A stretch of 64,000 bases of DNA. Source: Haliotis rubra (lineage: Eukaryota). Under the pieces are notes generated by a model. The model was given only the letters and a program-made list of their open reading frames with translations. It made no database searches and was not told the DNA's origin. Shown here piece by piece: positions 13,863 through 49,900 of the stretch; within the stretch, counting starts at the first letter, position 1, and each line of letters opens with the position of its first letter. The stretch lies in NCBI RefSeq assembly GCF_003918875.1, contig NW_025765669.1, forward strand, positions 3,844,001 to 3,908,000, given 5' to 3'. The position numbers and the translations under genes are program-made.

Positions 13863-13962
13863 AGATGGAATCGGAGTTCCAGATCTTTTCCCACGAAGAC
13901 ATCACTGGGTATGTCCAGTTGACAGTGGACATTGAACGGGATCAACTGTTAGTTGGAGCAAG
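13863..13962 (+). CDS. Sema5: Sema5 exon (start of Sema domain): MESEFQIFSHEDITGYVQLTVDIERDQLLVGAR
   Basis: ttttcag acceptor, AG|gtaagg donor; LLVGAR semaphorin motif; phase 1 to 2. Confidence 0.9.
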
Positions 13963-16900
13963 GTAAGGAAGCCTAGGAGTGAGTGAGTGAGTGAGTGAGT
14001 TGGGTTTAATGGTGCTTAACAGTATCACGGTTGTATCTTAATGTCAGAAATGCCTAAACTAATGGACCCGTGAAGATCCGGGTTAGAATTGGTCTTCAGT
14101 AACCCATGTTTGTCGTAAGAGGCGGCTAACGGGATCAGGATCACTGATTTGTTTGACACATGCCATTGTATCCTAATACGTAGATTGATGCTCATGCTGT
14201 TGATCACTGGATTGTCTGGTCCAGACTTGATTATTTACAGACCGCCGCCAAATAGCTGGAATAGTGCTGAGTGTGCCATTAAATAACAACCAACCAGGCA
14301 ATCTAAACTCATGACATTTACCACTTTTGTGAAACCAATTAGCATGTGTATGAAAACCTGAAACATGAAAACCTGAAACATGAAAACCTGATCAGAGTAA
14401 ACCAGGATTCAAACCCACAGTCATAAGTATTGGGCATGCAAAGGGAAATAATTCTGTACAACCTTCAAATCCTGCACACTATCCCATGGCCTGTTCAGTT
14501 ATTCCTTCATATAGATCCTGGTGTTCCAGAGAAACAGATGCAGGGGTGGAAATAACTTTAAAATTGCTAGTGTACTCCGGTACAGTGGCACATGTAAAAT
14601 CACTTGCCCTGATAATTTTTCCACTATACCGAGCCGTTTTCTTGTTGATTTTTTAAATAAACAACATAATTAACATTGGAATATCAACTGGACACCGGTA
14701 CAGTGTGATATACAAATTTGCTTGCCCGACAGAAGAAAACACTGGACTCGGGCGTCGGGCAATGGGTTATTTCCACCCCTGAGATGGTCCCTAAGACTTC
14801 CAGAAATGGGGAAATAATGTAAGACTGCAAAGATGCAAAAGAACGCTCAGTGATGGACATGTTCCGGCAAGCATGTGCTTTTGTCAGATATCGGTGTAGC
14901 TGTCCAATTAGGGGCTGGTGTGAAATTGTGAGGTTGTTGGTTCTTATTAACCTAGATTGAGTCAGATTGTTGACCAGGGTGAGCAGAGGGTTGAGTGAGA
15001 GATGACCATGCTGTTTTAGCTCCAGACACAAACAGATGGTGTTAATTACTGCAACAATCTTTTCTTGTTAACAGTTTGAAGTGCCCCTATGTAAAGGAAT
15101 TCAATTTTGCAAGAATAGATATTGTCATATACAAATTGCTTATATACTCACAGAGACTCAAACATGAGAAAATACACTTTCACTTGGGGGTTTGATCATA
15201 TTTTCTTATCACTTATGTTTCGTGGATTATTCTGATATTCCCTCCCTCGTATTCATCCTCCCAGCTTTGTGTTCCAGAGCCTGATTGTTCCAGTTGGCCC
15301 TACAGAACTGCAGATCCCCACCATATCTTATAGATTATTCTTTTATTCCTGTATATGCATTCTTATGTTCCAGGGGCTGTCTGTTCCAGTTGGCCCTACA
15401 GGACCTGGAGATCCACCACCATATCTCACAGCTTATACTGATATTCACCCTCTCTTCCTTGTGTTCCAGGGGCTGTCTGTTCCAGTTGGCCCTACAGGAC
15501 CTGGAGATCCTCCACCATATCTCATAGCTTATACTGATATTCACCCTCTCTTCCTTGTGTTCCAGGGGCTGTCTGTTCCAGTTGGCCCTACAGGACCTGG
15601 AGATCCTCCACCATATCTCATTGCTTATACTGATATTGACCCTCTCTTCCTTGTGTTCCAGGGGTTGTCTGTTCCAGTTGGCTCTACAGGACCTGGAGAT
15701 CCACCACCATATCTCATTGCTTATACTGATATTGACCCTCTCTTCCTTGTGTTCCAGGGGTTGTCTGTCCCAGTTGGCTCTACAGGACCTGGAGATCCAC
15801 CACCATATCTCAAAGCTTATACTGATATTCACCCTCTCTTCCTTGTGTTCCAGGGGTTGTCTGTTCCAGTTGGCCCTACAGGACCTGGAGATCCTCCACC
15901 ATATCTCAAAGCTTATACTGATATTCACCCTCTCTTCCCTGTCTGTTTCAGTTTCTACAGGACCTGGAGATCCTCCACCATATCTCAAAGCTTATACTGA
16001 TATTCACCCTCTCTTCCTTGTGTTCCAGGGTTGTCTGTCTCAGTTGGCCCTACAGGACCTGGAGATCCACCACCATATCTCAAAGCTTATACTGATATTC
16101 ACCCTCTCTTCCTTGTGTTCCAGGGGCTGTCTGTTCCAGTTGGCCCTACAGGACCTGGAGATCCACCACCATATCTCAAAGCTTATACTGATATTCACCC
16201 TCTCTTCCTTGTGTTCCAGGGGCTGTCTGTTCCAGTTGGCTCTACAGGACCTGGAGATCCACCACCATATCTCAAAGCTTATACTGATATTCACCCTCTC
16301 CTCCTTGTGTTCCAGGGGCTGTCTGTTCCAGTTGTCGGCTTTTGGTCTCTACAAGGATGATGGAGATCCACCACCATATCTCACAGCTTATGCTGATATT
16401 CACCCTCTCTTCCTTGTGTTCAGGGGTTGTCTGTCCCAGTTGGCTCTACAGGACCTGGAGATCCACCACCATATCTCAAAGCTTATACTGATATTCACCC
16501 TCCTTCCTTATGTTCCAGGGGTTGTCTGTCCCAGTTGGCTCTACAGGACCTGGAGATCCACCACCATATCTCAAAGCTTATACTGATAGTCACCCTCTCT
16601 TCCTTGTGTTCCAGGGGTTGGCTGTCCCAGTTGGCTCTACAGGACCTGGAGATCCACCACCATATCTCAAAGCTTATACTGATATTCACCCTCTCTTCAT
16701 TGTGTTCCAGGGGCTGTCTGTTCCAGTTGGCCCTACAGGACCTGGAGATCCACCACCATATCTCAAAGCTTATACTGATATTCACCTCTCTTCCTTGTGT
16801 TCCAGGGGCTGTCTGTTCCAGTTGGCCCTACAGGACATGGAGATCCACCACCATATCTCAAAGCTTATACTGATATTCACCCTCTCTTCCTTGTGTTCCA

Positions 16901-19900
16901 GGGGCTGTCTGTTCCAGTTGGCTCTACAGGACCTGGAGATCCTGCACATGGCTGAGTGGAAGTCCTGACAACCTGACACGGGATGTTTGTATTGCCAAGG
17001 GCCAGCCACACCAGTATTGTCACAACTTTGTGAGAGTTCTCCTGCTACACAAGGACAAGGTGTTCACATGTGGGACCAACGCATATAAACCAGAGTGCAC
17101 ATGGAGAAACGTGAGTTCTTCTGGATCCCCATCCATTAAAGACCAGTTATAACATCTCAGTGATGGAAAACAATCATCCATAGAACCATATAACATAGAT
17201 ATCCAGTACATTATACAGGAATACATTCCTTTTAGGCATGTTACAGTAAATTATAGCCTCCATCATAGGACTCCAAATCCAAATTTTGGATTGGTTTTGT
17301 TTCCCTTTCCACTGCCCATTTCTTCTGCCCCCTGCCATGGTATTGCTGGAATATTGCTGAAAGCGGTGTAAAACTAAACTCCCTCACTCCCTCTCCACAC
17401 TCTGAAATCTAGCCCTATGATGGCTGTGTTGACCAGGCAAAACAGGGGTTAATGTCATGAGCAATACTCTGACCTAGGGTGAAATGAGGAGTATATAACA
17501 CAGCAAGGTGAGGTGAGGTGAAATTGGGCGTCGATCTTGAGAATATTTGGCTCATATGACGCGCGCGCATGTGGTGTATGTGTATAATGCGGCTGCTTGT
17601 ACTAGCCCAGACTTAAGCTGGTTTTATAGTGCTAGCCCACTGAGATACCATGCTGCAGTGAAGCATGAATATCCCACTCAGACACATTATACTGACTTCG
17701 AGCCGACCAGTCGTTGTTGTACATATTAATGCCGAGCGCCAGGCAGGGACCAACAAGTACCATATTTTAACGTCTTTTTGGTATGACGCGGCCTGGGATC
17801 GAACCCGCGACCTTCTGCTCTCCGGGCGGACGCTCTAACCACTACACCACTGAGGCGGTCAACACAGCAAGGGGTGGGATATAAGGGTAGTGTAGCAGCA
17901 GAGCATACTCTCGTCCTGCCAACACCCTTGGTTAAATTCCACAATGCGAAAAATGTCTGAACGCCTATTGTCATGAAGCTGTCATGAATTAATCACTAAA
18001 AACTGGATTCAACAATACTCTCTCTTTCTCTCACTTACTCTTTCAGGCCAGCCACTTAACTGAAGTGGAAAAGACAATCAACGGCCAGGCCAAATGTCCA
18101 TACAACCCCTACCAGAATGCAACAGCGTTGATGACGCCGTCAGGAGACCTGTACACCGCCACCGTCATCGACATCACAGCCAGGGACCCAGTCATCAGCA
18201 GAGACCTGGGGCCTTCACAACAACTGCGAACAATGCAGAGAAATTCAAAATGGCTCAATGGTGAGACGTCAGTTCAATATGTTTTATTACAAAGTGACTT
18301 TTATACTGCTCAAAATTGTTAAGGATTACCCAAATTTTTCAAATTACTATGGTCTTGCTATCATGATGGATTATCCACAATAATATGAAAGAGTAAGGCA
18401 GTTGTTAACTTTTGGTGTGTAGTATATATGTGCCTCAGGGGCGGTGAGGTAGCCTAATGGTTAAAGCGTTGGCTCGTCACGCTGACAACCTGGGTTCGAT
18501 TGCCCACATGGGCACAATGTGTGAAGCCCATTTCTGGTGTCCCCCGCCGTGATATTGCTGGAATATTGCTAAAAGCGGTGTAAAACCCAACTCACTCACT
18601 CACTATATGTGCCTCATGACTTTGTGAAAGTTTTATGCTGGAAATAACAATTCTGATTCCTTTTTAGGAATTAGAAATAATTCATTTTAATATTATTTTC
18701 AGTATTTTGTGTAAGTAACACTTAAATGAGACACAAATGATATTTTAAATGATGCAGCTCTAATTTTGGATTGGTAGAGCAAATTATGGCCTACTATGGC
18801 AGTAACTGATCTGATAAATGAACTGTTCAGTTTGGATGAAGTCAGATGCTCATGCTATCATCCACTAGAATGTCTGCATCAAATTGTCTAACACTTATAA
18901 GTCACATGTTATTAACATGGAGTATCAAGCCATGTATTTCCTTTTTACTTTTAACAGTCTCTATTGCAATGAAAGTCTAAGAAAAACATTTGAATTAAAT
19001 ATTTGAAAACAGAGTGACCTTGTTGACGTGCCAAATTACCTGAATTTATAAAAGAACTTTATTAGGCCATGAAAAGGGAAGACCCTTATCATGTTGGGGG
19101 TATTCCAGTTGTGCTGTGTAAACTGACTACTTTTCTTAGGCTATTAATAATTTGTTGTAACAAATATTAATATTGTATAAATATTACCTCTTTGTATGTC
19201 AAGGTCGTTTGGATTTTCTTGAACAATTATATTTCTCCTTGGGTAATGAAATAAGTTTTGCAGTATGCGAGGAAAAAGTAGTTAGTTGACTGCAAATTTT
19301 CAAAATATGCCTAAATCAAGATGGTTTTTGATGGCAAGGGAGAAAGGTAAACTGGTTCTTATAGTTCTCTGACATCGGATGCTGGTCAGTTTGGGTGTTG
19401 GGTTACCGAGTAGTGGCTACAGGAATTGAACCCTTCATGAGAGGTCACTTTCAGGAACTTTATGCTAATGATATCTAATTATTTTCCATATAGAGTTGAT
19501 TGAACTGGTCTTCCTGTTCAAGAGAGGAAGTTCAATTTGGTGATCATTTTGGTGTTGGAAGTTCCGTGAATGTACCGTGTTTTAGACCTCTGTCTATATT
19601 TCAGGATAATAGTGCTCTTTTATGGTGCAAAGTTCTTTGGGTCAAGCTTGTTTTTATTCATATGTATTTAACTTTGAACATTTTGTCATGAGAAATTGTC
19701 AAAATGTATTAAATGCTACACAAACAATTTCTCTCTTCTTCACAGGTTGTTGAAGTGTTAATTTAAAGCGTTAAAGGAAAACCAAATTCAGGTCATTCAG
19801 AAGTTCTAAGAAATGTATGTGTACTACTATAAACACCACCTTCTGTGTCTGCTGGTTTAAATATTGTATATGCACCCAACAGTTATGAATTCGCTAATTA

Positions 19901-25900: not shown

Positions 25901-28900
25901 ACTACAATTAGTGTGCGGATTTATTCTCCAGGGAAAGACACGATGCTCGTAATCTGATTACCCAGTCTTTGCAATTCCACAAAACGGAGTCATTGCCAGG
26001 GGCCCGGAACAGTTAGTTAACTGTTGGAAAAGACAGAAATTCTATAAATGAGGATATTTAGTTTGGGCAAAGATGAGTCAATATTGTAAAGGATTTCTAT
26101 TTTAATGATGAAACATGGTGGGGGATGAGCTGATAATTTAAAATCTTTGTAGTTTGTTCAAGAGTGTGAAGGGAAAGTGATTAAGTAATTAATTAGCTTC
26201 ACCGTTGAACTCCTCAATTCAGTTCAGGCTGTCGATTCTGATAAAAAAACAATTGTCCATCTGATAAATTCTTTTTAGAAAAGAAAGTGTTCCGTAAATT
26301 TATGAAAATTTGATTAATAAAACTGGAATTTTGTTTGTTGTAGCATATTAAGATATAACTGCACTGAATATTTTATTTTTTCAGAGCCCAACTTTATAGC
26401 TTCCTATGAAATAGGAGAATTTGTATATTTTTTCTTCCGAGAAACTGCAGTCGAGTTTATCAACTGCGGCAAAGTAAGTACTCATTCTTTTCCTGTAAGT
26501 GAATAATACAGTCACAGGGTTCATTATACAATGTAATGACAAAAATTGTACATCCGGCTTCATTCAATTCATTATTTGCTCAAATATTGATTGCAAAATT
26601 TCGAAAATGTTTCTCTGATTTTGGTTTTACTGATGTTGGTATTACTGATTAATTTGTTTTTTTCCTTGATATTGAAACCGATACTGATATTTTGTCATTT
26701 GTTGTGTATGTTATCACATTAGTTATTACATACTGCTGAAAAAATGTTGAGGAACACCCACAATTTACATTACCCACTGTGGGAGAACAGCAATAGTCAC
26801 GTAAAAATTGTGTGTTGTTAATTTCTTTTGAGTTATATGTCTACTTGTGGAACTGTTAAATAACAAATTATCTCTTACAAAATATGTATAGATTCAATGT
26901 CTTGTGTTTTGTTTTTCAGAAAACATATTCACGTGTTGCAAGGGTTTGCAAGGTAAATATACTGAAGGGGATAAATAAGGCAACAGGGAACTGTAATGGA
27001 GATTTTTCAGTTTAGGGTAAATGGGAATAGTATGATATATGTCCATGGGAATATTACACGTCTGATATGACAGCAGTTACCTTGTGAGTGTACTGATTCA
27101 TCTCAGTGAAGTCCTGGGTTTGAGGGGCGGTGGGGGTAGCCTAATGGTTAAAGCGTTGGCTCGTCACGCCGAAGACCCGGGTTCGAATCCCCACATGGGC
27201 ACAATGTGTGAAGCCCATTTCTGGTGTCCCCCGCCGTGATGTTGCTGGAATATTGCTAAAAGCGGCGTAAAACCAAACTCAGTCAGTCAGTCCTGGGTTT
27301 GAGTCTACTAATGTGTGATGCACATGTTTGATGTCCCCATGCTACTAGATGCTCATGACCCTGCTTCATCTAAACCCTGTCAATGGATCACTGGGTCCTG
27401 AAACTTCATTCTCAACTCCCTGAGGAGTATACAACTCAAACTGACTATGAGATGTGAGGAGATTATCAGTCACATTACCATCTCGTCCTATCAGGTACCC
27501 ATTCGCTACTGAGTGAATACAGGCATGTTTTTTAATGAAGCCATTTGCTGACTGAAAGTGGCATAACACTCACTCATTGTCACATAGGAGAACTGACAAG
27601 CAGTCATGTGAGATACATTTAGATCACCTGGCACAAATACAAGAGAGCTTTTGTTTCAGTCAGAATTTAGAATCTATTCTGATTTGCTAAATTTTTTTAC
27701 ACAAATATTTTGAAAATGTTTCATGTTTGAAGAATGTTTTTTGTTGTTGTTTTCAGACTGACGGAGGTGGGAGGGTTCTTTTAGAGGAGAACTGGACAAC
27801 ATTCTCCAAAGCCAGAATGAATTGCTCAGTACCAGGGGATTTTCCATTCTATTTTGATGAAATACAGAGTACATTTTTCTCTGAAAAGGAACAGCTTCTA
27901 TATGCCATCTTCACAACGCCTTCGTAAGTGAAGCACTGTCTTTATCAAAACTAATTTCCTTGCATGTGTGTGATATCTGTATGTGTGTCTATATCTGTAC
28001 ACCTCTGTCTATGTTGGTCGGGAAAATGTACACCCAAGTCACAAAGCGAAAAAATAAGAACAGATTTTAACTCTATCTGAAAAGGGATTAGGAAGACGAT
28101 ATTTTTTGAAATAACTGAAAAATCGTTATTTTTTAACTTCCATTTTGCTGATATCTTTATAGATCATTACCGGTACATCTTTTGCTCTACAATGTATATA
28201 CTACACTATTGACATGCATGGTAGCAAAAATAATGTCTATGGTGGAAGGGAGACAACTCTCATCAGGAAACAAGGATTTTATGTGTCTGTTTGGTTAGAG
28301 ACATGTTCAAGAGCTTTGCTTCTTCCTGGTCATAGGTCATGCTAGAACAAATTATGGTGTCCTTTACAATCTTGTCAGCTTTTGTAGAACTACAGTGTGT
28401 GTAACATGCATTTAGTAAGCTCTCAATTCTCGTTTTTTCCCTATATGTACCAGGAATATGTATCCCAGTGTCATGGGTACAACATTTGATTTTCTGTGGG
28501 CTGGGGGACATGGTTTTAGATTTGCCATAATAACGGTAATCAGTCCTTTGAATGCTCTAAGAATAATTTTTATATCAGTTCTTATCCCAAAGCAATTCTT
28601 TATCTGTATGATATAGCTTCCTATATCGAAACTTATGTATTGCTGAACACCTGAGATGTTGGGATGTTGTCTTATTTTAGAATATTTTATGCAAAATTAT
28701 AATTATTGTGATACAGTTTTTCATTATCGGTGCTCTCATTTGTTTAATTTCAGAAATAGTTTAGCCGGATCAGCTGTGTGTGTGTATAACATGTCCGCGT
28801 TCCAGACAACATTCATTGGGCCGTTCAAGTACCAGGAGAACGCCAAGTCTGCTTGGATGAAGCATGAAAACCCAACTCCATTGGAAAGGGTAAATACCAA

Positions 28901-31900
28901 ACTAGCAGACACACTCAACCCTGCCTATTTAGACAGAATGGTGTGGAGCAAGACAACATACTCGTGCACTCACTCACTCACTCTTTATGTTGTGTAGGGG
29001 CAGGGGGGTAGCCTAGTGGTTAAAGCGTTGGCTCGTCACGCCGAAGACCCGGGTTCGAATCCCCACATGGGTACAATGTGCGAAGCCCATTTCTGGTGTC
29101 CCCCGCCGTGATGTTGCTGGAATATTGCTAAAAGCGGCTTAAAAAACCAAACTCAGTCAGTCAGTTGTGTAGGGGCGGTGGGATAGGCTAATGGTTAAAG
29201 CATCCGCTCGTCACACTGAAGATCTGGGTTTGATTCCCCACATGGGTACAGTGTGTGAAGCCCATTTCTGGTGTCCCCCGCCGTGATGTTGCTGGAATAT
29301 TGCTACAAGCGGCATAACACCATACTCATCCAATCACTCACTCACTTTATCTTGTGTTTTGCCAAGCCAGTGGAAGTAGAGAGTAAACAGCTGTGCAGCC
29401 AATAAGATGTCACACTAGGACATTACCGAAATACTTTTAAAGCAGAATTAAACCTAACTCACTCACTCACTGATACTGTATGTTGTCCATCTCTGTCCAG
29501 TGCCCCAGCCAAGGCAGCGGAAGTAAGCGGTCAACAGACACGTCGGCCAGTAAACTAGAGGCAGCCAACATGTATCAACTGATGGACGCAGCCATACAAC
29601 CCAACACCATCTCCCCGTTGTACCTTGGGGAGAACGAGAGGTAACTGCCCATGTTGGAAGTTTAATCAGACTAACGCTTGGTCTCTGAATATATATGATT
29701 TTGATAGTAACAAATAATCACATTTTAATTAAAAAGGAGCCCCAGTGAGATAGGAGATTCAGATCCTGAGGTAATCTAGACTTGCTTCATTTAGGCCTTT
29801 AGCATTGCAGGGAGGGCTGGCAGTAGGGAAGATGATGTGGTTCAGGGACTGTGAGACAGACTAGAGGTTTAATCACTGATTCATAGCTGACATTAAGGAA
29901 GTCATCATGTCGCAGCCTTGGTTTGGTATTAATCAGCATTTGGAATGAAAATTCTCAATTACTTTCTTTAATTGATGATGAAAGATTTCTTTTGATGTTT
30001 CTTCATCATGAAGTAAGGAAATTACATAAACCGATATACATATGGCAGGCAGAGGAAGTAGTACCTAGCAAGACTACTTGTCCTCATTTGCTTCATTTTC
30101 TGGTCGATTTATCAATTAATTAATCGAGATAATTGAAACGTATGTTTTCCCAATTTTTTCTTTCAGAGTAATAAACAAATATAGTAAATAGAATAAATAT
30201 AAAGAATAAACAAAATATGTATACATCAACTTATTTAATACATAATTATTATTATCTCAAAGACAAACAATGAACTCATCTTTGATCGATGTGAATGCTG
30301 GTGCTGTTTTTTGTTAAAAGTAAATAATTCATTTTCCTTCTTAAAACAGCCATTAACGTCATTCTGCTGGAACAGAACAGTTTTTCAATTCTTAAATCAG
30401 GGCCTTGCACCACAAAGCAATCGTAGTGCTATAATAATTGTAATACCCGGTATTTACAGGTGGACTCATATCGTGGTGGACTTTGTGTACGGCAAGATGG
30501 ACCTGTATGAGGTGGTGTTCCTGGCTACTGCCGATGGAAAGATTCGGAAGATGTTCAAGGTTCCCCGCTCCAACAAAACCTGTCTCATTGAAGAGATAAA
30601 AATTGTGCCCAACGGGGAACCTAAGCCAGTAAAAGCTATGAAAATCTCTCCAGAATCGGTAAAGTATATTTCAAAGAATCCTTTACAATGTGAGAATTCA
30701 TTAGATATTTGGTCATTGTGACCAATTTTGAATAGTTTTATGTGAACATTATGTAATCCCATGATTCAGTGGTGAAAATGTTCCTTCCATCTTGTAATTC
30801 TTGACACAGTCGCTGTGAATAGCTGCAAAATTGCTGATGCTGCGTTAAGCAATATTTACTCACTGACAATAGTATATATATATATATATAATAACAAATG
30901 TTTCAGGCATCTGAGATAAAACTCATCCAATTTACATGACAGCAACATTTAAAGATGTTGTGAGTGGAACATTGCTTTCCTTTCTGTCATGCCTTATTAG
31001 CCGCCATACAGCTGGAATATTGCTGAGTGTGGCATAAAACTAAACTCACTCACTCACTCATGCCTAATTCAACACTACATTCACTCTAGACAATGATTGT
31101 CATTGAAATTTTGATTTTGATAGAAACAAGAAACAGCATTCAAAATGAAAAGGATCCATTGTATGATTTGAGATTTTAATTTTGAATGATATTTGACATT
31201 TTATTTCCAGGTTGAATGTTTTGCTGAAGATATTTTCCATTGAATGTTGTTATTGAAATTTTATTCATGGAATATTGTTTGTCCAGGGTGCAATCTTCAT
31301 TTCCACCCAAGGGAGAGTGATAAAGATCCCTGTTGAAAGATGCAGCCGCTTCACAGACAGCGAGTAAGTCAAGAGACAAGCCACTTTGTATTTTCTTCAA
31401 GCAGCAATCTTTCATTCAAAACACTGTGTATTCATTTACTGTTATGTGGTAGTGCCCAGCTGGAATGAATTTAAAAATGATTTGTGCAGTCATGACTTAT
31501 GGCTCTTTCTCTCTTAAATATATCTCTGGCCAACCAGTTAAACTCTCAGTGTCACACGGGATCGGGTGGTCAGGCTCGCTGACTTGGTTGACACATGTCA
31601 TCGGTTCCCAATTGTGCAGATCAATGCTTATGCTGTTGATCACTGGATTGTCTGGTCCAGACTCGATTATTTACAGACCGCCACCATACAGCTGGAATAT
31701 TGCTGAGTGCGGCGTAAAACAAAACTCACTCACTCAGTGTCACATGTATTGCTTTGGTCCAAATGTTTTGGATTTTGTATGTTTTTAAGTATAAACTACT
31801 TTCAAATTGAAGTAGTGGGTTGATAATTTGGATTTGATGCCACTTTCAGCAATACCCTGGCGGTACTGTATTGGGGGACACCAGACATGGGCTTCACACA

Positions 31901-34900
31901 CTGTACCCATATGGTTATGTGAATCTTGGTCTTTGGTATAATGAGCAAATTCTTCAAACACCACTGACTGACTGACTGAGTTTGGTTTTACGCCGCTTTA
32001 AGCAATATTCCAGCAACATCATGGCGGGGCACACCAGAAATGGGCTTCACACATTGTACCCAAGTGGGGATTCGAACCCGGGTCTTCGGCGTGACGAGAC
32101 AACGCTTTAACCACTAGGCTACCCCACCGCCTCTTTAAACACCAGGCTACCCAAGTGAATTAAAAGAAGGGCAATGGGGTAGGCTAGTGGTCAAAAAACA
32201 TTACCTCTACATGGCTAGGTTTGATTCCCAACATGGGTTCAGTGTATAGGGCATATTTTGGTGTTCTGCACTCTGACAGTGATGGAATATTTCAAAAGTG
32301 GCTTAAAACCATTATGACTTGTACTTTGAAAATATCTTTAACAAATGTCAATAAAAACATTGTTGTGTTTATTTCAGTTTGTGTGTGAATTCCATGGACC
32401 CGTACTGTGGCTGGGATGCAGTTAACAACACCTGCTCACGTGCCCCTAACGGAAACCCTCACGAGGTCATGTGGGACCAACACATTGTCTCCTGTCCCAT
32501 TGTCCAGTACCCAGGTATGAATAAATAGTCATACTTGAAGAACAATCACTTTCCAATTACTTGCCATGATTTAACTGTGTTCATGCTGATTATATCATTT
32601 TACATTAATCCCTGATTTAATGACGCATGAATTCAGACAAAAATATTTTAAAATTTGTATGAGATACATACAAATATAATCATCATGCTTTGCTAGTAAC
32701 GTTGATGATGAATCACCTTATCCTCAGTAAAAAGCACCTGACCAATGAGATATCTAGAAAGATATTGCGAAAAATTGAATCCTTTTCTGTAACGCCACTA
32801 AGAAGAAACCATCCACTCAGATACCTTTAAGGGGTATTGATTAATGTTTATCACCATGTCCCAATTAAGTGCTGACCAATCACAAACCAAAATCTTGTGG
32901 ACAATATTGTTGTTTACATATTGCCCTCTGTTCCCTCAGTAAACAGCATCTGCCCAATCAGAATTAGAAGTCATGGACAGTATTGTTAATATTGCCCTCT
33001 GTTCCCTCAGTAAACAGCATCTGCCCAATCAGAATTAGAAGTCATGGACAGTATTGTTAATATTGCCCTCTGTTCCCTCAGTAAACAGCATCTGCCCAAT
33101 CAGAATTAGAAGTCATGGACAGTATTGTTAATATTGCCCTGCCCTCCTCAGTAAACAGCATCTGCCCAATCAGAATTAGAAGTCATGGACAGTATTGTTA
33201 ATATTGCCCTCTGTTCCCTCAGTAAACAGCATCTGCCCAATCAGAATTAGAAGTCATGGACAGTATTGTTAATATTGCCCTCTGTTCCCTCAGTAAACAG
33301 CATCTGCCCAATCAGAATTAGAAGTCATGGACAGTATTGTTAATATTGCCCTCTGTGTCCTCAGTAAACAGCATCTGCCCAATCAGAATTAGAAGTCATG
33401 GACAGTATTGTTAATATTGCCCTCTGTTCCCTCAGTAAACAGCATCTGCCCAATCAGAATTAGAAGTCATGGACAGTATTGTAAATATTGCCCTCTGTTC
33501 CCTCAGTAAACAGCATCTGACCTATCAGACTTAGAAGTCATGGACAGTATTGTTAATATTGCCCTCTGTTCCCTCAGTAAACAGCATCTGCCCAATCAGA
33601 ATTAGAAGTCATGGACAGTATTGTTAATATTGCCCTCTGTTCCCTCAGTAAACAGCATCTGCCCAATCAGAATTAGAAGTCATGGACAGTATTGTTAATA
33701 TTGCCCTCTGTGTCCCCAGTGAACGGCAACTGGTCTGACTGGTCAGACTGGAGTCCATGTGAGCAGGTTGGGGCTGACCAGGCCGGGGAGGACTGTCTGT
33801 GTCGCCATAGAAACTGTGATAACCCCAAACCCTACTATGGAGGACGGCCATGTTCAGGGGCTTCCATTGAAGTCACCAACTGCTCAGGTGAGATGTTCCA
33901 TCTTATTCTACTTTCCTGATTGAATCCTGAAACTTTTGTATCTGTAAAGTGATATATTAACCTGAACAGTACCTTTCTGAATGAAATTGCTGGACTTACA
34001 AATTTGCAGATTTATTCATTGTTAATTGATACATAAATAATGATTACTTGTGTGGATTCCTTAGCTATTTTTAAGAGGCATCTACATGGGTCAGGTGGTC
34101 TGGCTTAGTTATTTGGTTGATTGCATGTCATGTTTTTGTGGGCTCTCTGCTGAGTGAAGTATTGACTGACTGACTGACTGACTGAGTTTGGTTTTACGCC
34201 GCTTTTAGCAATATTCCAGCAACATCACGGCGGGGGACACCAGAAATGGGCTTCACATTGTACCCATGTGGGGATTCAGAACCTGGGTCTTGGTGATGAG
34301 CCAACGCTGTTAACCACTAGGCTACACTATAAAACCAGCAAGTCAGTGAAGTATTGAACAAGCCAAAACACATAACAATGTATGCATAGGTATACATAGA
34401 TATTCCGAACAGAATCCTTCAGGAAGCTGTCATCTTGACCAGTCCTGTGTGACCTCTAAGTCTCACTGTATTTTTATTTCCCGAATCAGTTCTCTGTCAT
34501 ACACTAAAGACAGAAAGATCACAGTGCTTGATTTAAGTCTTTTCAAGTTGTATCATCTCTGTGTTTTCAGTTCACGGGGCCTGGACCCCATGGACCCCGT
34601 GGTCCAGCTGCTCCAAGACGTGCGGCTACTCCATCAAGAAGCGAGAGAGATACTGCAGCAATCCTACCCCTCGACATGGTGGATTCGGCTGCGAGGGCCG
34701 CCATGTTGACAGCCAGCTGTGTGCCGGTCTACCAGCCTGTAAATGTACGTACTCTGTGTGTTGTGTAGTGGGTGATGGGTCCCTGTAAATTGCTGTAATG
34801 TTTGCCATAAACTTAAGATGAGTAATGTTTTTATTGTAAAAGGTTTGTGTAAATATCCGTAAATAATGCTCAACATAATTTTAACTTTACTGTTTTCGAA

Positions 34901-37900
34901 ATCAGTCTGTGTTGTGCATTTTCAAAACACTAATTACAGTAATGAATAAAAAAAATTGTGCAAATTTAATTTGACTGCTTGTACAATTTACATGTGTTTT
35001 CTTTTATGAGACTACCCACAGTTATTGACATTTTAACTGAGCCGAAAATATACTGTCCCCTAACCAATGGCCCCATTTTGTACTGACTGCTGACTTGTGA
35101 ATGTATACTTGACATGACGTGTTTGTTGGAAAGTGACGTCTGTATCTGCTGTTGTCAGTGCCCCCTATTGATGGGAAATGGTCGAAGTGGTCTGGTTGGA
35201 GTACATGCACGGCCAAATGTCAGGGCGGTATCCAGACCCGGCGGCGGACATGTGACCAGCCCAAGTTGAGTCGTGGCGGAATCCCGTGTATCGGGAACAA
35301 AGAAGAAATGAGGATGTGCAACACCCAGAACTGTGATAGTAAGTTGTCTGCTGTACAGTAGTGGTTGGGGAAATAGCATCAAACAGCAGAAGTCGCGATT
35401 ACAAGTATCACAGAAACAGGAAAGGAAACAAAGATGTAACAAATCAGATGCTAATTCTTTGAAACAACCTTAAAGTGATAATCCAACTCTCAGTCGTGTT
35501 GCTGTCACTACATTTGGTAGCCTGCATAATGACCATAGGTCAATTAACACTGTAAGACAAACCTGTTGACATTACGGTCCATGATAAACAAGTTTCAATC
35601 CAAGGACTTGGTTTTTTTGGTTGTTGTTTAATGCCACACTCAGCAATATTCCAGCTATATGGTGGCGGTCTGTAAATAATCGAGTCTAGAACAGACAATC
35701 CAGTGATCAACAGCATGAGCATCGAAGCTATGCAATTGGGAACTGATGACATGTGTCAACCAAGTCAGCGAGCCTGACCATCCGATCCCGTTAGTCGCCT
35801 CTCATGACAAGCATGGGTTACGGAAGACCAATGCTAACACGGATCGAATCCAAGGAGAAAAACTCCATCCTTAGTTCAATACAATCAAAGTTGGGGTGGT
35901 GCCGCTCTTTAATGTTTTCCTCAAATCTTAAAATATCCCAGTCTTCTTTCTCAAAGGGGGCGGTGGAGTAGCCTAGTGGTTAAAGCGTTGGCTCGTCACG
36001 CCGAAGACCCGGGTTCGATTCCCCACATGGGTACAATATGTGAAACCCATTTCTGGTGTCCCCCGCCGTGATATTGCTGGAATATTGCTAACAGCAGTGT
36101 AAAACCATACTCACTCACTCACTCTTTCTCAAAGAAGACTGAGTCCAAATTCACTGTGTTATTGACTTCTAGACAGTTGAGATCTAAACACAGTTCATTC
36201 CATGTCAGTTGTCGGAGCAGCCTTGGCACAGAATTCAGCTTCCTTTTCTCATGAAAAAATAGACACAGTTTGTTGGAATTGTATTTTGCTGAATTTCCCT
36301 TGATTTGAGTAAATATTCAAAATTACATTAAAACTGATAATGCAAGATTGTTGATTGGAGCCATATTCATTTATAATCAAAGTAATATGTTGTTTTTTTT
36401 AAAGTTTGACAGCATGACAAAAACATGTTGTCATGTTCATCTGTGAAATGGCAAATATTATTTTCATCTTCAGAATTTAATAAAACTTTATCAATATATT
36501 TGCAGAAGTGGTCAAGTTGACGCCGTGGAGCCCCTGGGTGAAGACAAATGAAACGCGAGGAGGATATTTCCAGCAGAGATTTAGATTTACATGCCAGGCC
36601 GAAGTGCCGGATCGCAAGATGATTAAATCCAAGTACTCAAAAAGCCAGGCCCGTTTCTGTTTCAACAACGATCGAGGCTGCTATACTCCAGGTGAGCTGA
36701 AGAACACCATAACATCTGTAGATACGTTTTCCTCCGTAGATAGAGTGCTCAAAAAGTTCTGTAGAATTAGGAGAAAACTGTTCAAAAAGTACTGCAATTG
36801 TCGGACATTGGGTGTGTTCCTGGTGTGTCAGAAGTGCGGCTACGGATGACTAGAGGGGTCCGCTGACGAGATAATGCTCATTCTGCTGTCACTAAGAAGA
36901 TACCGAAGGAGGCCGCCATACTAACACCACAATTCAACTTTGATTGGCTACAAGATTCATCACGGAGATTCATGGCTTGATTTTCTTAGATTTTGATTTA
37001 CCGTTATTTTTATTTTGCTGGACGTTAACATCAGAATGGAATGGAACCCATTTGGGGATCACTGCAAGCTTCGGGGAACACCACTACTATCAAGGGAAAT
37101 GTGTCGCCAAATGCTCAAATCTGAAGAATTCCGAAAAACAGTTTAATCATGTCATGTGATCAACAGATACACCATTGTCCAAATGTCATCAGTGCTATGT
37201 TCCTTCCAACTGATAATGACAAAGGGACATATTGTTAAGCAAAGAAAATTATTCAGCATTTCACTTGTTACTGCATGTTTTTCACAATGCACAATAACTC
37301 ACAATTTTCATGACATAGTGTCAATGTACAAAGTATGTATAAAGTGAAAAAATCCCTTTTAATATATTCCATCTATATTAGTACCAGCATAATCGTTAGA
37401 ATTAAAGAATACAGAAATACAAGAAATCCTCGGGAGAGTGGAATATTATCACGCAAACTGTCCAGCAGACAATTCAAAAATATGTAAAAGTTGTACAAAA
37501 TGTAGAAATAGTAGAAAAGATATAGACCAATCATAAGTACTCAAGAAAATAGTGTCAGTAAAACAACAACGGCGGATATGACAGCAAGTAGTATAAGTCT
37601 CGATCAGCGATATTTTTCAGTCATAACTTAGGCATCATGGGATATCAACCCCTTTGTATCAATTATGTGATCAAACTCAGACAAGGTGAAAACACAATGT
37701 TTGTATGTGTGAAGTGTATAGGAAGTTAACCGTACTGAACGAAAAAAATAAGTAAATAAATATTTCGGGGATATTTTTATGAAATTGTGTGCTTAGTCTG
37801 CACATCAAGAAATATCCTCCGGAATATTCATGTTCGCTAACTTTTTTTGTACAGTATATTATAGTTTTATATCAGTGAACAAGATTATTAAAATTGCAGA

Positions 37901-43900: not shown

Positions 43901-46900
43901 AATGCTGGGATGGCATGGTAATAAATGACATCATAATAGCCTCAAACATTCTGATGAATGTCATTGTAGTAATAGGTCCCAAGCAATATCTCTAGCCTCC
44001 AAGCAATATCTCTTGTGGAAGACATTATTGGATGATATAGGTGTTTATCCCACATCAAACTGTTCAACAGCATCTGTACCATTATGTATGTGCACATTCT
44101 GCATCATGTGTGTGGTGAGTTTTCCTGCAGTTCCTTTTCTAATATCAGGGCCTGTGCATGCTTCCTTGGGTCCATTGATCCCATCAGGGAAAATGGTTAC
44201 AATCTATTTTACAGAGAGTATGGATGGCCAGTTGTCTTAGGCACTTTGGCTTTCCATCAGAAGTTATGTCCCTTGAACATGCAAGGATTCAGTTCTCTTA
44301 GTGTCAAATGTCAGATTTTGCCCTAGCTCTGTTTCTAGGTTTGTCAGCCCTGTTTGTACCATGGCAACAGTTTCCGACATTCAGCCTCCCACATCAAGCT
44401 GACATAACCCAACCCACTCACTACAGTTTGATTGCAAAAAACAAACAAAACAAACTAAAACATTTAGGTGTTAATAGATACTTCAGATTTTTCAGGAAAT
44501 ATATTTCTTCTCTGAGGCAAATTAAAGTATGTAATCTGACTATTACAAAGATCTGACAAGTCTATTCGAATCTTAATTGTATGATCACTAGATATATGAT
44601 GCCCCAAGTTATGTTTCTCAGATGCAGGATCAGTTTCAATTATGGATTACTATAACAAAAGACCTGACACGGTGCTTACATATAAACTTTTGTTTCTACT
44701 AATTGTTGCATCGTTCCTGAATATAATGTATTGACATTGGAATGTTTATGCATGATATTGTTTATTAACAAAATTAATTACAAAGTTACAAATTTTCTTG
44801 TTCCAGCGCAACACCAACCTCGATTATCTGGGCATTGTATCTCCATTGCAATGATAAATGACCTGGACTTATTTACCACCATAGCTTCTTTCGGTGTCAG
44901 ATTTGCATGATGCTATAAATAGACATCCAATCAAAATTTCAAGGGGAGACAGCTCTTGTGTTAAGATGGATAGGTGAAACTATGACATCACTTCCAACTT
45001 GAAGCTTTGTTGGTGAATGTGTCCAGGTTATGTATCTTATGGAATTGAGATAAAATACCCTTGATGATTGAGGATGGCTTGCCACTTAGTAAAACACTTC
45101 AGAATGAAGTTGCAGATATATATGTACACAGCTCAAGTGTACACTCTCCCTTGCCAACCTAACTGCTTCAGATCGTGCCCCTCCCGTCTCCCAGCTTATA
45201 ATGTTTAATATTGACCACTAATTATTGTTGTGACTAGTACTGAACTGTTTGTTTCTGGGGAAGGTATACATAATATATAGCGTTACCATCAAACATATAT
45301 TACATCACAATTCAAGCACTTTTATATAGAAATAAAACAACTTTTTAATTGTTTGTGTAATAAAGATCTTTTCTTAATATCAAAAAATGTTGTCAGGTTA
45401 AATCAAGCACTTTTTATATAGAAATAAAACAATGATTTATCATTAATAATATTTCAAACTGACATGTTTAGGTGTATGTAAAAGGATGCAATTTTACAAA
45501 ACTGATGCATCAATTGATTTTGTTGGTATGTATTTTAATATACGGAACAAAATGGTTTTGGGTCTTGAATATTTTGGGGGATACATTTTATTAGATAATG
45601 TGCTCAGTCTTAAGTACAAAAATGCATCTCCCAAAATATATTGATGACCCCTAATAATTTTTGACAGTATATATTGTGAATTCTTGACAATATTTCATTG
45701 ATAACTGTATCAGTTTTGAACAAAATTACCCAAAAGGTTCACTCTACAAGTTGGTTTTGAAAGATGTATGTACAAATATGTCTATGAAACATAAATAATC
45801 ACTTCAGATTTGATGAAGCAGTTGATGAAGTTTTAGGTTTCAGGAACAGAATATAGTGAAATAAAAGATCTGATTAAAGTAAAAAGTGTAGCAATATCTC
45901 CTCCTAGTGTGATCCTCATCAGTGATAAATATTTCTGTCATGATGAAATCACATTGTTTTGTTCTGCGCTGGTTTCAGACTCGCCACTCTTGGTACATCA
46001 GGATGGTGGGTGGTCCGAGTGGACGGAGTGGTCACCATGTGACCAGGACTGTGAGGGAGGTATGCAGTGGCGACGTAGGTCATGTGACAGCCCTCCACCA
46101 ATCGGGCGAGGGAAGGACTGTGATGGGCACGGGAAGGAGGGAAGACAATGCAACACGCATTCTTGTTATGGTGAGGATGTTGACGTAGTTGGAGCAGGGC
46201 ATGGCGTCATCCCACAAATGGCATCATTATCTAAAGTACCATGACATGAGACTTAACACCCTGTCCTTCAGTTAAAAAATAGTAGGTTACAATAAGATTC
46301 ATGTAAAAAGATGTGTTACAATTCAAATGTACAACCTCCAAGCAGGTGTTACTATTCAACTGTAAAACCACCAAGCAGGTGTTACAATTCAAATGTACAA
46401 CCTCCAAGCAGGTGTTACTATTCAACTGTAAAACCACCAAGCAGGTGTTACAATTCAAATGTACAACCTCAAAGCAGGTGTTACTATTCAAATGTACAAC
46501 CTCCAAGCAGATTTTACACAAACAAGATTCATGTGTAAAATATACAGTTTAAATGTCAACCTTGAAGCAATCAGGTTAAACCAGCTTCTGCTTACCAGGC
46601 AAAACACTGTATCCACTAGGCCACAGAGGCAAAGTGGGCTTTGCACTTCAGGCCTTAACTCATGCCAATATCTATCTGAAATACTGTGACCGCCTCTGTA
46701 GTGTAGTGGTTAGAGTGTCCGCCCGGAGAGCGGAAGGTTGCTGGTTCGATCCCTGACTGCGTCATACCAAAAGACGTTAAAATATGGTACTTGTTGGTCC
46801 CTGCCTGGCGCTCGGCATTAATGGGTACAACAAGGACTGGTCGGCTCGGAGTCAGTATAATGTGTCTGAGTGGGGTATTCATGCTTCACTGCGGCATGGT

Positions 46901-49900
46901 ATCTCAGTGGGCTAGCACTATAAAACCAGCTTAAGTCTGGGCTAGTACAAGCAGCCGCACATACACATACACATGCATGCAGGTCGTCATATGAGCGAAA
47001 TAATCTCAAGCACGACGTAAAACCCAATTTCACCTCACCTCACCTGAAATACTGTGACATTTAACTCAACCCACTCACTCATGCAATGTGTGATTGTTCA
47101 CCAGGTGAGTGGTCCTGCTGGTCAAGCTTCGGCCCGTGTTCAGTGACCTGTGGTACTGGGATCAAGGCCCGCAGTAGGACCTGCTTGACCCCAGGCCTGG
47201 ACAGGAAGACCCCGCTCGGATGTGTTGGCAGTACCAGGGATATGCAGACCTGTGAGATGGAGCCTTGTGAAGGTGAGGGAACTCTGGGTAATAACTGCAG
47301 ACGTGTGAGATGGAGACGTGTGAAGGTGAGGGATCTCTGGGTAATAACTGCAGACCTGTGAGATGGAGACGTGTGAAGGTGAGGGATCTCTGGGTAATAA
47401 CTGCAGACCTGTGAGATGGAGCCTTGTGAAGGTGAGGGAACTCTGGGTAATAACTGGAGACCTGTGAGATGGAGCCTTGTGAAGGTGAGGGATCTCTGGG
47501 TAATAACTGCTGACCTGTGAGATGGAGCCTTGTGAAGGTGAGGGATCTCTGGGTAATAACTGCAGACCTGTGAGATAGAGCCTTGTGAAGGTGAGGGAAC
47601 TCTGGGTAATAACTGGAGACCTGTGAGATGGAGCCTTGTGAAGGTGAGGGGATCTCTTGTAATAACTGCTGACCTGTGAGATGGAGCCTTGTGAAGGTGA
47701 GGGATCTCTGGGTCATAACTGGAGACCTGTGAGATAGAGCCTTGTGAAGGTGAGGGAACTCTGGGTAATAACTGGAGACCTGTGAGATGGAGCCTTGTGA
47801 AGGTGAGGGATCTCTGTGTAATAACTGGAGACCTGTGAGATGGAGCCTTGTGAAGGTGAGGGAACTCTGGGTAATAACTGGAGACCTGTGAGATGGAGCC
47901 TTGTGAAGGTGAGGGAACTCTGGGTGGAGACCTTACTGGAGCCTTGTGAACATGATCTCTGGGTAATTACTGGAGCCATGTGAGGGAACTCTGGGTACTT
48001 ACTGGACACATGTTCGAGCGAGGGTATTTGATATGGATGATAATGAGATGGGACTGTGTGACAGTGTGGCGACTCTGGGTAATTATTGGAGATGTGTAAT
48101 GGTGCGGTCCCAGTGCAGACCTTACGCTACTTGACCTTCTCAACCTGAAGGTCAAGTTGGGGGTTCGAGCTGGTCGAGTTTCAGAACGAGTTAGGTCGAG
48201 TCAGATCGAATCAGGTCTACCAAGTTTTTGATAAAATTTTGACAATGTCAAAAAATTTCCCCCAACTTCCTCTTCGACCTTTGGTCCGAGATTGGGTTGA
48301 GAATAGGTCGAGGTAGGTCGAAAAAGGTCCAGCTTAGGTCGACATTAGGTTGAGTTGGTCGAGTTGAAGGTCGAGCTGGCCTGTCATGCCGATCTGTGTT
48401 CGTCTTAGAGCCGATCTGTATACGGCCTCGACTCGACCTTGAGTCAACCAACTGGAACTGGCCTCAACTTGGACTCAACCTGGAGTCGACCGACTCGACC
48501 TGAAATCAACCTTTCTCGACCTCAACTCAACCTAATCGAGTCCGTGCCGACCGCATAAATGGTCGCCATCTTCCCAATTGCTTAATAAAAGCCAAACGTC
48601 AGCCAGTGGTAGCACATCATCTCTACACCAACCTGCTGCCACCCAGAGATCCACCCTGAGCACACCACCCTCTTCAACACGCCGCAAAGCAGCGGAACAG
48701 GCTGGTATCTTCCCCAGCTTTGACTTCAGTGCTGCAGCAGGTATATCTCTGAACCTGCCAAGATTTAAAAGCGTCTCTTGGACCCTACACACACCTCAGA
48801 GGATCAGTCACATGTTCAGGACTCTCAGCAAGGACAGTGAAACTGAGAAGTAGAACTTGATACTCATATATTGTCATGAGCACTTTATACTGATGTGAAA
48901 TGTTACCTTCAGATTATTTAAATGAGTTTCCAATAAAAGATTTAAAAGCTTTTTTTCATCTGATATTTTTTTGAATTTTCCATCCATCGCTAAGTTTAAA
49001 AGTAAATACATCTTGTACAATTGTAATAGAGTTTGTTTTGTTTACCATGTATATAGTTTTCATTTTTTTTTTCCCCCGGATTTACCAATTGTAAATAGTG
49101 TAAATAAAAAACAAACAAGAGTTCCTTTGTAAATGAAGTAGTCCTAAATAATAGAGTACACTTTAAAGTCATTTGGATATCATCTCCTCTTGCCAATGAA
49201 CAGCTCCTGGGCCCATAAAATGGTTTCTTTGGTTGGCGCCATCTAGAGGGGTAACGTTCCTCGCACCCCGGTTATCCCCATCAAGCAGCTGTGTGCAGGA
49301 GCGCCACTCGCCTGGGGTGAGTGAACAGTCCTCATTCTCCTGGTCTTTGAGGTTCATCTGACTGTTCCGGTTCCTCGTTCTCAGCATGTTGTGTAAAGTG
49401 ACGCAGGCCAGGGTTATCTGTTCAGCTCTGTCTGGAGTGCTATTTAGGGAGCCGAGGAGGATCTAGAACCTCATAGCCACAATCCCGAAGGTATTCTCGA
49501 CCACTCATCTGGCCCGAGACAGTCTGCAAAAGTCACAAATTAAACATTTTTAAGTCAAATGCATTAAAAATTCAAAACCTTTGATATTATATTGTATACA
49601 CTGAAAGATACTAAGTTATAATTTGATTTAGGTATTTATGGAAAAGAATAATTACCTGCAGTTGAAGATCTTCTGATGGGGTCTATCTGACGCATGGAAA
49701 AGGACTTCATTCAGGGGCGGAGTGGAAAGGCATCGTCGCCGATGAAGTATGGCACACCATATGGGGAATACAAGATTATTGCCCTTCATCCGATCTTGTG
49801 AATGGTTGAAGACCATCAGCGTCTGATGCTGATCCCTTGGCCCCGACGTTCACCCACGGGAACTTGTAGTCGGCATCCGCGAGTGCCAGCAAGACAATAG

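Follow-up and report, generated by a model that had tools for sequence, protein, structure and literature searches.

Three tandem arrays (A1, A2 and A3) in a 64,000-nucleotide stretch of Haliotis rubra DNA, hereafter the window, each span an exon/intron junction of one gene. We consider that they are probably mirage-type junction minisatellites, that is, by-products of tandem duplication that splicing tolerates. They belong to a known class, that of the amphioxus mirages and of the human F7 VNTR. What is new is that their junctions and register are shared with H. asinina, that variants are common to exon edges and decoy sites, and that junction arrays arose independently in the Saccostrea echinata copy of the gene.

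Three arrays straddle working junctions of a Sema5A-like gene

The host gene is Sema5A-like and lies on the + strand, with Pfam TSP_1 on six exons. By mapping the H. asinina Sema5A-like protein P0162 onto the window with tblastn, we set the true splice sites (Table 1); the exons share ~94% nucleotide identity with this ortholog, and the first TSP1 exon is 100% identical to P0162 residues 551-607. In P0162, the junctions fall at GAR|GCLFQ (A1), YP|VNGNW (A2) and EPCE|D (A3), so that two of the arrays lie on acceptors and one on a donor. A1, A2 and A3 also have the three top TRF scores of the window, the next best being at most 532. Both the ranking and the mapping confirm what the initial annotation had proposed, namely that three arrays straddle working junctions of one gene.

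Table 1. Exons, arrays and related features of the Sema5A-like locus, in window coordinates.
Feature	Coordinates	Strand	Sites and basis
Sema-domain exon, ends ...DQLLVGAR	13847..13962	+	donor GT 13963-64, which starts the A1-bearing intron; tblastn of P0162; sequence
Array A1, 96-bp units x17.5	15267..16942	+	TRF; unit-by-unit alignment; sequence
Sema-domain exon GCLFQLALQDLEILHMAEWKSDNLTRDVC...CGTNAYKPECTWRN	16902..17110	+	acceptor AG 16900-01, donor GT 17111-12; P0162 mapping, contig X11
Surplus assembly base in TCCTGAC, breaks reading frame	16964..16966	+	contigs; H. asinina sequence
Degenerate distal remains of A2-type units	32722..32917	+	local alignment; sequence
Array A2, 71-bp units x11.5, 96% matches	32918..33732	+	TRF
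First TSP1 exon VNGNWSDWSDWSPCEQ...	33720..33887	+	acceptor AG 33718-19; Pfam TSP_1; P0162
Ordinary intronic 33-bp array (contrast)	46313..46518	+	TRF; comparison with H. asinina
Sixth TSP1 exon GEWSCWSSFGPCSV...MQTCEMEPCE	47105..47272	+	donor GT 47273-74; Pfam TSP_1, P0162 mapping
Array A3, 53-bp units x12.9, 94% matches	47243..47925	+	TRF
Degenerate tail, older 32-38-bp-type units	47926..48100	+	TRF 47909-48013, period 32; compare H. asinina L001 97086-97840

The A1 unit consists of 55 nt of intron and 41 nt of exon, and carries a branch-point-like TACTGAT, a pyrimidine tract and AG ahead of its exonic part. Seventeen such decoy acceptor cassettes precede the true junction, which is the last unit; the main AG is kept in 16/17 of them and one is identical to the true junction at 62/62 positions. 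In A2, 21 nt of intron are joined to 13-14 clear nucleotides of exon, with a weaker trace ~40 nt beyond (z 2-3). All of its 11 decoy acceptors keep the AG and its context and 7 units are mutually identical, the true junction matching the decoy consensus at only 31/35 positions. The A3 unit is made of 30 nt of exon end and 23 nt of intron, and the true donor lies in the first unit; AAG|GTGAGG is preserved in each of the 12 decoys behind it. The unit alignment thus counts 39-40 decoy sites over the three arrays, in agreement with an earlier estimate of ~39. The three units had also been described as unrelated, and indeed we found no sequence common to them beyond the level of shuffled controls.

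The arrays were further said to extend only into the intron and to decay distally. All three do grow into the intron only, and their most degenerate copies are distal (15267 and 15362 for A1; 32722 for A2, where 32722-32759 matches 32/36 of the unit positions covered by local alignment; 47937-48083 for A3), but unit identity does not drop smoothly along A1. In A1, TRF also detected higher-order periods of 192/288 bp, which support unequal exchange. By contrast, the ordinary 33-bp array of Table 1 begins 142 nt past the donor of the fifth TSP1 exon and spans no junction, nor is there an equivalent array in H. asinina.

Since words of the arrays were found in short-read contigs from two individuals, and orthologous arrays exist in the independent H. 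asinina assembly, A1-A3 are not inventions of the assembly. Their copy numbers are given as assembled, short-read contigs breaking inside the arrays. A search with ARAGORN found no tRNA in the SINE-like repeats.

The gene is intact and seems to use its true splice sites

A pseudogene was suspected because the exon following A1 shows a frameshift in the window. However, the extra base responsible is an assembly artefact: position 16966 is absent from contig X1, position 16964 is absent from contigs X11 and X13, and H. asinina reads TCTGAC where the H. rubra assembly has TCCTGAC. With the base absent from short-read and RNA-like contigs and all other exons intact, a decaying pseudogene was rejected. 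An acceptor at 16917|16918, which would keep the assembled frame open, was rejected too, as the first frame follows the ortholog residue by residue and the contigs begin at 16900-02.

In the RNA-like contigs X11 and X13, position 13962 is spliced to 16902 and position 17110 to 18047, with no 96-nt unit retained; in X11 record 15, 16900-17110 is directly followed by 18047-18260. We take X11 and X13 for RNA from their spliced contigs, which are assembled, come from a related sample, drop rare isoforms and cover A1, so that site use at A2 and A3 is read from gene models. The models of four Haliotis species have the same true sites, with YP|VNGNW at A2 and EPCE|D at A3. No decoy-site use was seen either in the RNA-like contigs (A1) or in the models of these four species. 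For nearly every decoy, the predicted product contains a premature stop. Most transcripts spliced at a decoy would be targeted by NMD, and therefore hard to see.

Two other ways of using the units were considered and rejected. A stop-free 96-nt unit read in frame could give longer isoforms, but only the nearest A1 decoy keeps the frame; those beyond it run into stops, given the indels in some units and the 95-nt length of others. As for recursive splicing, the arrays have no AG|GT cassettes: the AG of A1 and A2 is followed by GG or TA instead of GT, and the AG before GT in A3 lies behind purine-rich exon sequence, unlike a recursive splice site.

Position, but not content, is conserved between two abalones

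In H. asinina, Sema5 has arrays at all three same junctions and in the same register. The counterpart of A1 shows a 96-bp spacing at 67844/67924/68020, that of A2 has 71-bp units at 84649-84896, and in that of A3, at 97086-97840 (L001), the intron border of the donor unit is the same as in H. rubra. A1-A3 predate the H. rubra / H. asinina split. Their position is conserved between the two abalones, whereas copy number, unit length, unit sequence and decoy integrity are not. H. rubra has 17 decoys in A1, 11 in A2 and 12 of 53 bp in A3, against 2, 3 and 19 of 38 bp, respectively, in H. asinina. Moreover, 2/3 of the H. asinina A2 decoys have lost their AG and several of its A3 units read GTGCGG, GGGAGG or AAA|GT. 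The 32-38 bp unit type of the H. rubra A3 tail is still present in H. asinina.

Units are 94-100% alike within a species while introns are 70-91% identical between the two species, which indicates concerted evolution. Edge units escape this homogenisation: divergence is greatest in the distal ones, and the true unit of A2 has diverged from its decoys. We also observed species-specific synonymous variants common to the true exon edge and the decoys. At A3, CCT is found in the exon and every decoy of H. rubra, and CCA in the exon and decoys of H. asinina, CCA also being present in the old A3 tail of H. rubra. At A1, the H. asinina exon shares CAACTAGCC with its nearest decoy, whereas the older decoy of this species has CAGTTGGCC, as does H. 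rubra. Turnover of the arrays continues, and the functional exon edge either trades sequence with them or seeds them anew. Faster divergence of exon edges beside the arrays was not significant overall, and differences clustered only at A1 (5 differences in 8 nt).

Among arrays of at least 3 copies, 3/3 junction arrays are shared with H. asinina versus 1/5 non-junction arrays (Fisher P ~0.07 on a small sample). The non-junction arrays of the window are smaller and mostly not shared, and the junction arrays are the largest of the H. asinina locus too. Variability in the decoy-core columns was not significantly below that of the other unit columns, in a test whose oyster part is circular because the oyster units were chosen by the core motif itself.

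Outside abalones, we picked the oyster locus by orthology alone. There, in the S. echinata ortholog, the two largest arrays span two other donor junctions of the gene. We found no junction arrays in the Lottia and Patella orthologs. The comparison covered these loci and H. asinina, the gene being longer than 100 kb in H. rufescens, H. cracherodii and Gigantopelta.

Duplication, hot spots, chance or selection

The window holds 3 junction arrays against 0.25-0.58 expected when each array is counted as one seeding event (P 0.001-0.02), a statistic biased by the choice of this window for its junction-array pattern; with every small TRF array included, P is only ~0.02. At the oyster locus, 2 junction arrays face 0.25-0.47 expected (P 0.02-0.08), and for three outgroup loci pooled ~2 face 0.6-0.8, which is not significant. 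When points were drawn at random in introns, 24/283 (8.5%) fell inside some local repeat, as did 3/35 junctions (8.6%), although dispersed repeats and uncollapsed arrays raise the count in this control. The junction excess is suggestive, but it varies with the null model. It would be quite improbable, in our view, that three arrays in repeat-rich introns coincide just by accident with some of the ~39 junctions of the gene: the random points, the higher P value and the selection of the window all agree with chance, but the control counts every array copy along with dispersed repeats, and by size the junction arrays take the top three ranks in the window, lead in H. asinina as well and hold the top two ranks at the oyster locus. 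The single-seed excess in the window and that at the orthology-chosen oyster locus could also mean that junctions are mutational hot spots, where transcription or splicing (through polymerase pausing, R-loops or transcription-replication conflicts) triggers duplication or drives the expansion of units with splice signals. We hold this to be unlikely. Besides the biased window and the pooled loci, the register common to two abalones points to single old origins instead of recurrent births, the junction sits at no fixed position of the unit (exon share 13-58 nt), as random breakpoints predict, and the Lottia and Patella orthologs are free of junction arrays. On the RNA-like strand, GC skew fits R-loops only at A3 (+0.19), since A1 (-0.12) and A2 (-0.09) are C-rich and thus of the wrong sign. 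In addition, no unit border coincides with a splice site, which excludes spliced intermediates as the template. The R-loop and RNA-templated origins that had been put forward for the arrays therefore fit poorly.

The initial annotation offered the alternative that the arrays are kept as splicing tuners. In such a reading, selection would retain decoys that soak up U1/U2AF, divert some transcripts to NMD for Sema5 dosage or act as backup sites. All three arrays persist in two species, hardly any H. rubra unit has a damaged decoy core (12/12 are intact in A3, for example), and most decoy products would contain the premature stops that an NMD-coupled device would require. Yet we found no support for such a role, which we regard as highly improbable: copy number and unit length vary freely between the abalones and unit sequence differs as well, decoys have decayed in H. 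asinina, whose arrays are older, the core columns show no significant drop in variability relative to the other columns, only the true sites are seen in RNA-like contigs and gene models, and Lottia and Patella manage without such arrays. For a regulatory decoy or NMD element, sequence, number and position should be conserved, and here position alone is.

We therefore favour tandem duplication tolerated by splicing. A short segment that held an exon/intron junction by chance would first have undergone tandem duplication; unequal exchange or replication slippage would then have expanded the array and made its units alike. The arrays would remain silent because the exon body always retains one adjoining copy, the rest falling into the intron. 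In exon definition, the innermost acceptor and donor are paired across the exon. From these splicing rules, acceptor decoys would be passed over in favour of the innermost acceptor-donor pair, and donor decoys would be silenced by 5'-to-3' scanning that picks the first of several identical donors, as in human F7. The prominence of junction arrays among those of the gene seems due to larger size and longer persistence, not to regulatory use.

Neutral duplication alone leaves unexplained why, in abalone and oyster alike, the gene has its largest arrays at junctions. Persistence across species could also mean retention by selection. We tentatively raise the possibility that, in molluscs, units bearing splice junctions are preferentially amplified and retained, given that they form the largest and most homogeneous arrays of this gene, that 3/3 versus 1/5 are shared, and that the two largest oyster arrays lie on other junctions. 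If so, a mechanism of instability or persistence would be coupled to splice signals or transcription, and decoys exchanging with the functional exon edge would feed clustered synonymous changes into coding sequence.

Relation to known junction minisatellites

Mirages are described in amphioxus, as the initial annotation stated, in Adh3, the globins BflGb6/BflGb9, troponin C (TnC) and PGBD5; their units span an exon/intron boundary on the donor or acceptor side with AG/GT signals, their copy number is unstable, and concerted evolution within the arrays leaves the edge units diverged (PMC3087553, PMC3902484). They are reported to be spliced normally (PMC3087553). Like them, the Sema5 arrays consist of tandem units over an exon/intron boundary that carry splice signals. 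The unit sizes of 96, 71 and 53 bp fall within the mirage range (tens of bp to ~160 bp), the real junction is the terminal unit (with an exon share clear for 13-14 nt only in A2), AG/GT recurs in many units, evolution is concerted, and splicing is undisturbed at A1, where X11 and X13 use 16901|16902. Unlike amphioxus mirages, they occur in another phylum, three in one gene, with 11-17 decoys each, and have orthologous arrays in a second species besides the independent ones of the oyster ortholog. Length differences of the Sema5 arrays were seen between species. We found no description of such arrays in molluscs in the searchable literature.

In the 37-bp VNTR of human F7 intron 7, the first unit spans the junction, and experiments demonstrated the choice of the most upstream among 5-9 identical donors, the pseudo-donors remaining silent (PMC1557585). 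The layout of A3 is exactly of this type, the true donor being the most upstream of an identical row, though with 13 sites whose use is deduced from gene models only. F7 offers no test for acceptor-side arrays such as A1 and A2. In the Rogers model, which has been discussed for mirages, introns are gained by tandem duplication across AG|GT (PMC3087553). Here too, a duplicated segment with splice signals makes extra usable sites, but every duplicate lies within pre-existing introns and no new intron or exon results. Ordinary intronic minisatellites of abalones share the size class and presumed slippage or unequal-exchange dynamics of A1-A3; one example is the length-polymorphic 27-bp array in intron 3 of H. 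discus hannai TSSK1-like, described as lying inside the intron with no report of junction inclusion (PMC6905558).

Until now, mirages have passed for a peculiarity of amphioxus, with a single human gene alongside. Their occurrence in abalone and oyster suggests that this class of intron repeats is wider and has yet to be counted. Each array also offers a natural test of how splice sites are chosen, as up to 17 sites match the real one fully or nearly so. If the exchange between decoys and exon edge is real, such arrays would bear on how the ends of exons and their splice sites evolve, and new introns or exons could arise from them. They also put genome assembly and gene prediction at risk: the Sema5A-like gene of H. 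rubra has a RefSeq model flagged LOW QUALITY PROTEIN.

Three Sema5 junctions carry mirage-type minisatellites

We found TSP1 domains in + strand open frames (Pfam) and a Sema-domain motif in the window; matches to the exon at 16.9 kb, used as query, were semaphorins, and a word search with best full-length match gave mollusc Sema5 proteins. By far the best fit was P0162, a Haliotis asinina semaphorin-5A-like protein, whose cluster includes H. rufescens, H. cracherodii and the H. rubra RefSeq model P0267; the last, flagged LOW QUALITY PROTEIN, shares the residues peculiar to the window. With junction positions set by P0162, the gene has 20 coding exons across 13847-52611. The assembled exon after the A1 array, which encodes conserved Sema-domain, shifts frame at 16960-66 (TCCTGAC, one surplus base). 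Base 16966 is absent from same-organism short-read contigs and base 16964 from related-sample RNA-like contigs; the contig readings differ there (TCCGAC vs TCTGAC), and H. asinina has TCTGAC. The surplus base looks like a C/T difference merged in the assembly consensus, and the frameshift is not real: the gene is intact.

Among the 36 rows returned by TRF for the window, the three top scores belong to the junction-spanning arrays A1, A2 and A3, all others scoring at most 532, and the three consensus units have no mutual similarity above shuffled controls. A1 places 17 copies upstream of the true junction, each with a branch-point-like TACTGAT, a pyrimidine tract, an AG and 41 nt of exon. The main AG is intact in 16 of these copies, one in the middle of the array matches the true junction at 62 of 62 nt, and degeneration is strongest in the two most distal ones. 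A2 consists of the true junction and 11 copies, seven of them mutually identical, with only 31/35 matches between the true unit and the copies; the exon share is clear over 13-14 nt with a weak trace beyond, and further upstream the copies are degenerate (32722). A3 begins 30 nt ahead of the donor and runs from the true donor through 12 decoys, all keeping AAG|GTGAGG, to a degenerate tail of shorter units. Together the arrays hold 39-40 decoy sites, in agreement with the approximately 39 of the initial annotation.

A1-A3 have the testable defining features of mirage minisatellites (undisturbed splicing being probable at A2 and A3), with length differences seen between species, and the layout of A3 is the same as that of the human F7 intron-7 VNTR. 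They therefore belong to a known kind. Within the searchable library we found no paper describing junction-spanning arrays in molluscs, and the initial annotation knew of no systematic description; an intronic minisatellite is reported in a single abalone study, the junction aspect being absent. The points added here are that the arrays are orthologous across two abalone species, that they exchange sequence with the exon edge, and that an oyster ortholog acquired its own arrays independently.

Junctions, arrays and related features of Sema5 (window positions unless marked L001, H. asinina locus, or L004, Saccostrea echinata locus)
Feature	Position	Strand	Description
A1	15267-16942		96-bp unit x17.5 (TRF); 192/288-bp higher-order periods describe it better
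A1 acceptor	AG 16900-01	+	GAR|GCLFQ in ortholog protein
A2	32918-33732		71 bp x11.5, 96% matches (TRF)
A2 acceptor	AG 33718-19	+	YP|VNGNW in ortholog protein
A3	47243-47925		53 bp x12.9, 94% matches (TRF)
A3 donor	exon end 47272, GT 47273-74	+	EPCE|D in ortholog protein
Micro-exon KTYSRVARVCK	26920-26952	+	33 nt, clean AG and GT borders; nucleotides 100% identical to H. asinina
H. asinina A1 counterpart	upstream of true acceptor		two decoys, ~96 bp spacing
H. asinina A2 counterpart			3.5 degenerate 71-bp units; AG kept in only one decoy
H. asinina A3 counterpart	donor side		20 units of 38 bp (15 nt exon + same 23 nt intron)
Oyster array 1	L004 14074-14631		68 bp x8.2; 58 nt of exon ending ...DQLLVGAR + 10 nt intron
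Oyster array 2	L004 21607-22238		68 bp x9.1; 41 nt exon + 27 nt intron

The arrays are shared by two abalones and exchange sequence with, or are re-seeded from, the exon edge

The H. asinina locus can be aligned to the window through most introns (70-91% identity) and has arrays at the same three junctions. Since the registers agree between both species, the arrays are orthologous and predate the species split. All three junction arrays are shared by the two abalones, compared with 1/5 non-junction arrays of at least 3 copies (Fisher P ~0.07). Within one species, units are 94-100% identical, a likeness that is concerted evolution. The 53-bp A3 unit of H. rubra equals the 38-bp type plus 15 extra exon bases, and 32-38-bp units are still present in its distal tail, indicating that A3 was re-seeded from the exon edge. 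Moreover, synonymous species-specific variants are common to the true exon and its own decoys: CCT occurs in the H. rubra exon and decoys, CCA in H. asinina and in one old-tail H. rubra unit, while CAACTAGCC is found in the H. asinina exon and nearest decoy and CAGTTGGCC in an older H. asinina decoy and H. rubra. The data show tandem structure, higher-order periods, shared ancestry and turnover, and also that the true exon edge takes part in exchange or re-seeding.

Within the repeated exon part, 16917-16924 and L001 68056-68063 have five differences in 8 nt, all residue-neutral (CAG TTG GCT CTA vs CAA CTA GCC TTA). This cluster, not significant alone, may be a tract converted from decoy sequence.

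Location and origin of the arrays

We picked three outgroup Sema5 loci by orthology only. The Lottia and Patella loci are compact (about 17-18 kb), with few arrays and none at junctions. In Saccostrea echinata, two arrays score far above the rest, both at donor junctions that differ from the three abalone ones, and thus arose independently. Most decoy units at L004 14133-14631 have GTGTGAGCAAG vs GTGGGAGCAAG in the true exon, which creates an in-frame TGA within their exon-derived part.

The initial annotation had considered the junction location non-random. When every array is counted as a single seeding event, 0.25-0.41 junction arrays are expected among the seven window arrays of at least 3 copies, or 0.58 when every TRF array is included, against three observed (P 0.001-0.02, in a window itself chosen for the pattern); the oyster locus has two against 0.25-0.47 (P 0.02-0.08). 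The excess is not significant when the three outgroup loci are pooled, and a cruder control, which also counts each array copy and dispersed repeats, gives no excess (24/283 random intron points in a local repeat vs 3/35 junctions). The excess at junctions is suggestive and varies with the null model. A consistent trait is that the largest and most homogeneous arrays in each lineage are junction arrays.

As for their origin, the arrays would have arisen by tandem duplication and grown by unequal exchange or slippage. The two targeted processes proposed previously fare poorly: R-loops are disfavored because GC skew is positive at A3 only, and templating by RNA from splicing intermediates because unit borders coincide with splice sites in no case. 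The suggestion that the arrays are splicing tuners is likewise disfavored, as decoys lack conservation of number, length and integrity and their cores show no measurable constraint.

The true A1 acceptor is used, and probably also the true A2 and A3 sites

All four Haliotis gene models have the same three junctions and retain no repeat unit. The stretch occurs in none of the runs recorded as RNA; spliced contigs came instead from X11 and X13, a pair of small runs presumed to be RNA. X11 record 15 joins 16900-17110 unbroken to 18047-18260, and in X13 record 22, 16900-17085 is preceded by 48 nt from the 13.9-kb exon. Thus, splicing goes to the true A1 acceptor, with no 96-nt unit retained, although contigs drop rare forms and low-level decoy use is possible. 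Splicing at A1 is read from RNA-like contigs and gene models, and at A2 and A3 from gene models. If decoys were used, the frame would survive only with the nearest one of A1 (+32 residues); the remaining A1 decoys, like every decoy of A2 and A3, would lead to stops. Decoys might be silent because pairing by the spliceosome across the exon involves its innermost sites. Among identical donors, the first would be taken, as demonstrated experimentally in human F7 (PMC1557585), and splicing is reported normal at amphioxus mirages (PMC3087553).

Other features of the window

Translation past the donor of the fourth TSP1 exon (36506-36846) yields a conserved cysteine-rich tail, ...CNCRTLGVFLVCQKCGYG, which terminates many mollusc Sema5 proteins of 830-845 residues. 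The tail probably represents an alternative last exon of a short secreted isoform, wrongly fused into the long form in the RefSeq H. rubra model (99 extra residues). A region with the last two coding exons and flanking sequence is present in two copies (50697-52528 and 59338-64000, 95-96.5% identity, ~8.6 kb apart), the second carrying a 2.8-kb insertion, and directly downstream of the first copy comes a third, partial one of the last-exon region (52928-53689, 93%). These copies reflect a genuine tandem segmental duplication or else haplotypes left uncollapsed. Word depths reach millions at 13951-14856 and 17273-17876 in every run examined, and both are very abundant dispersed repeats. Finally, 8915-9338 and 28989-29317 are tandem or dimeric SINE-like repeats, in which ARAGORN called no tRNA; their units have a tRNA T-arm-like GGTTCAATCC / GGTTCGAATCC box, and 8915-9338 has an H. 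asinina counterpart at L001 62089-62313.
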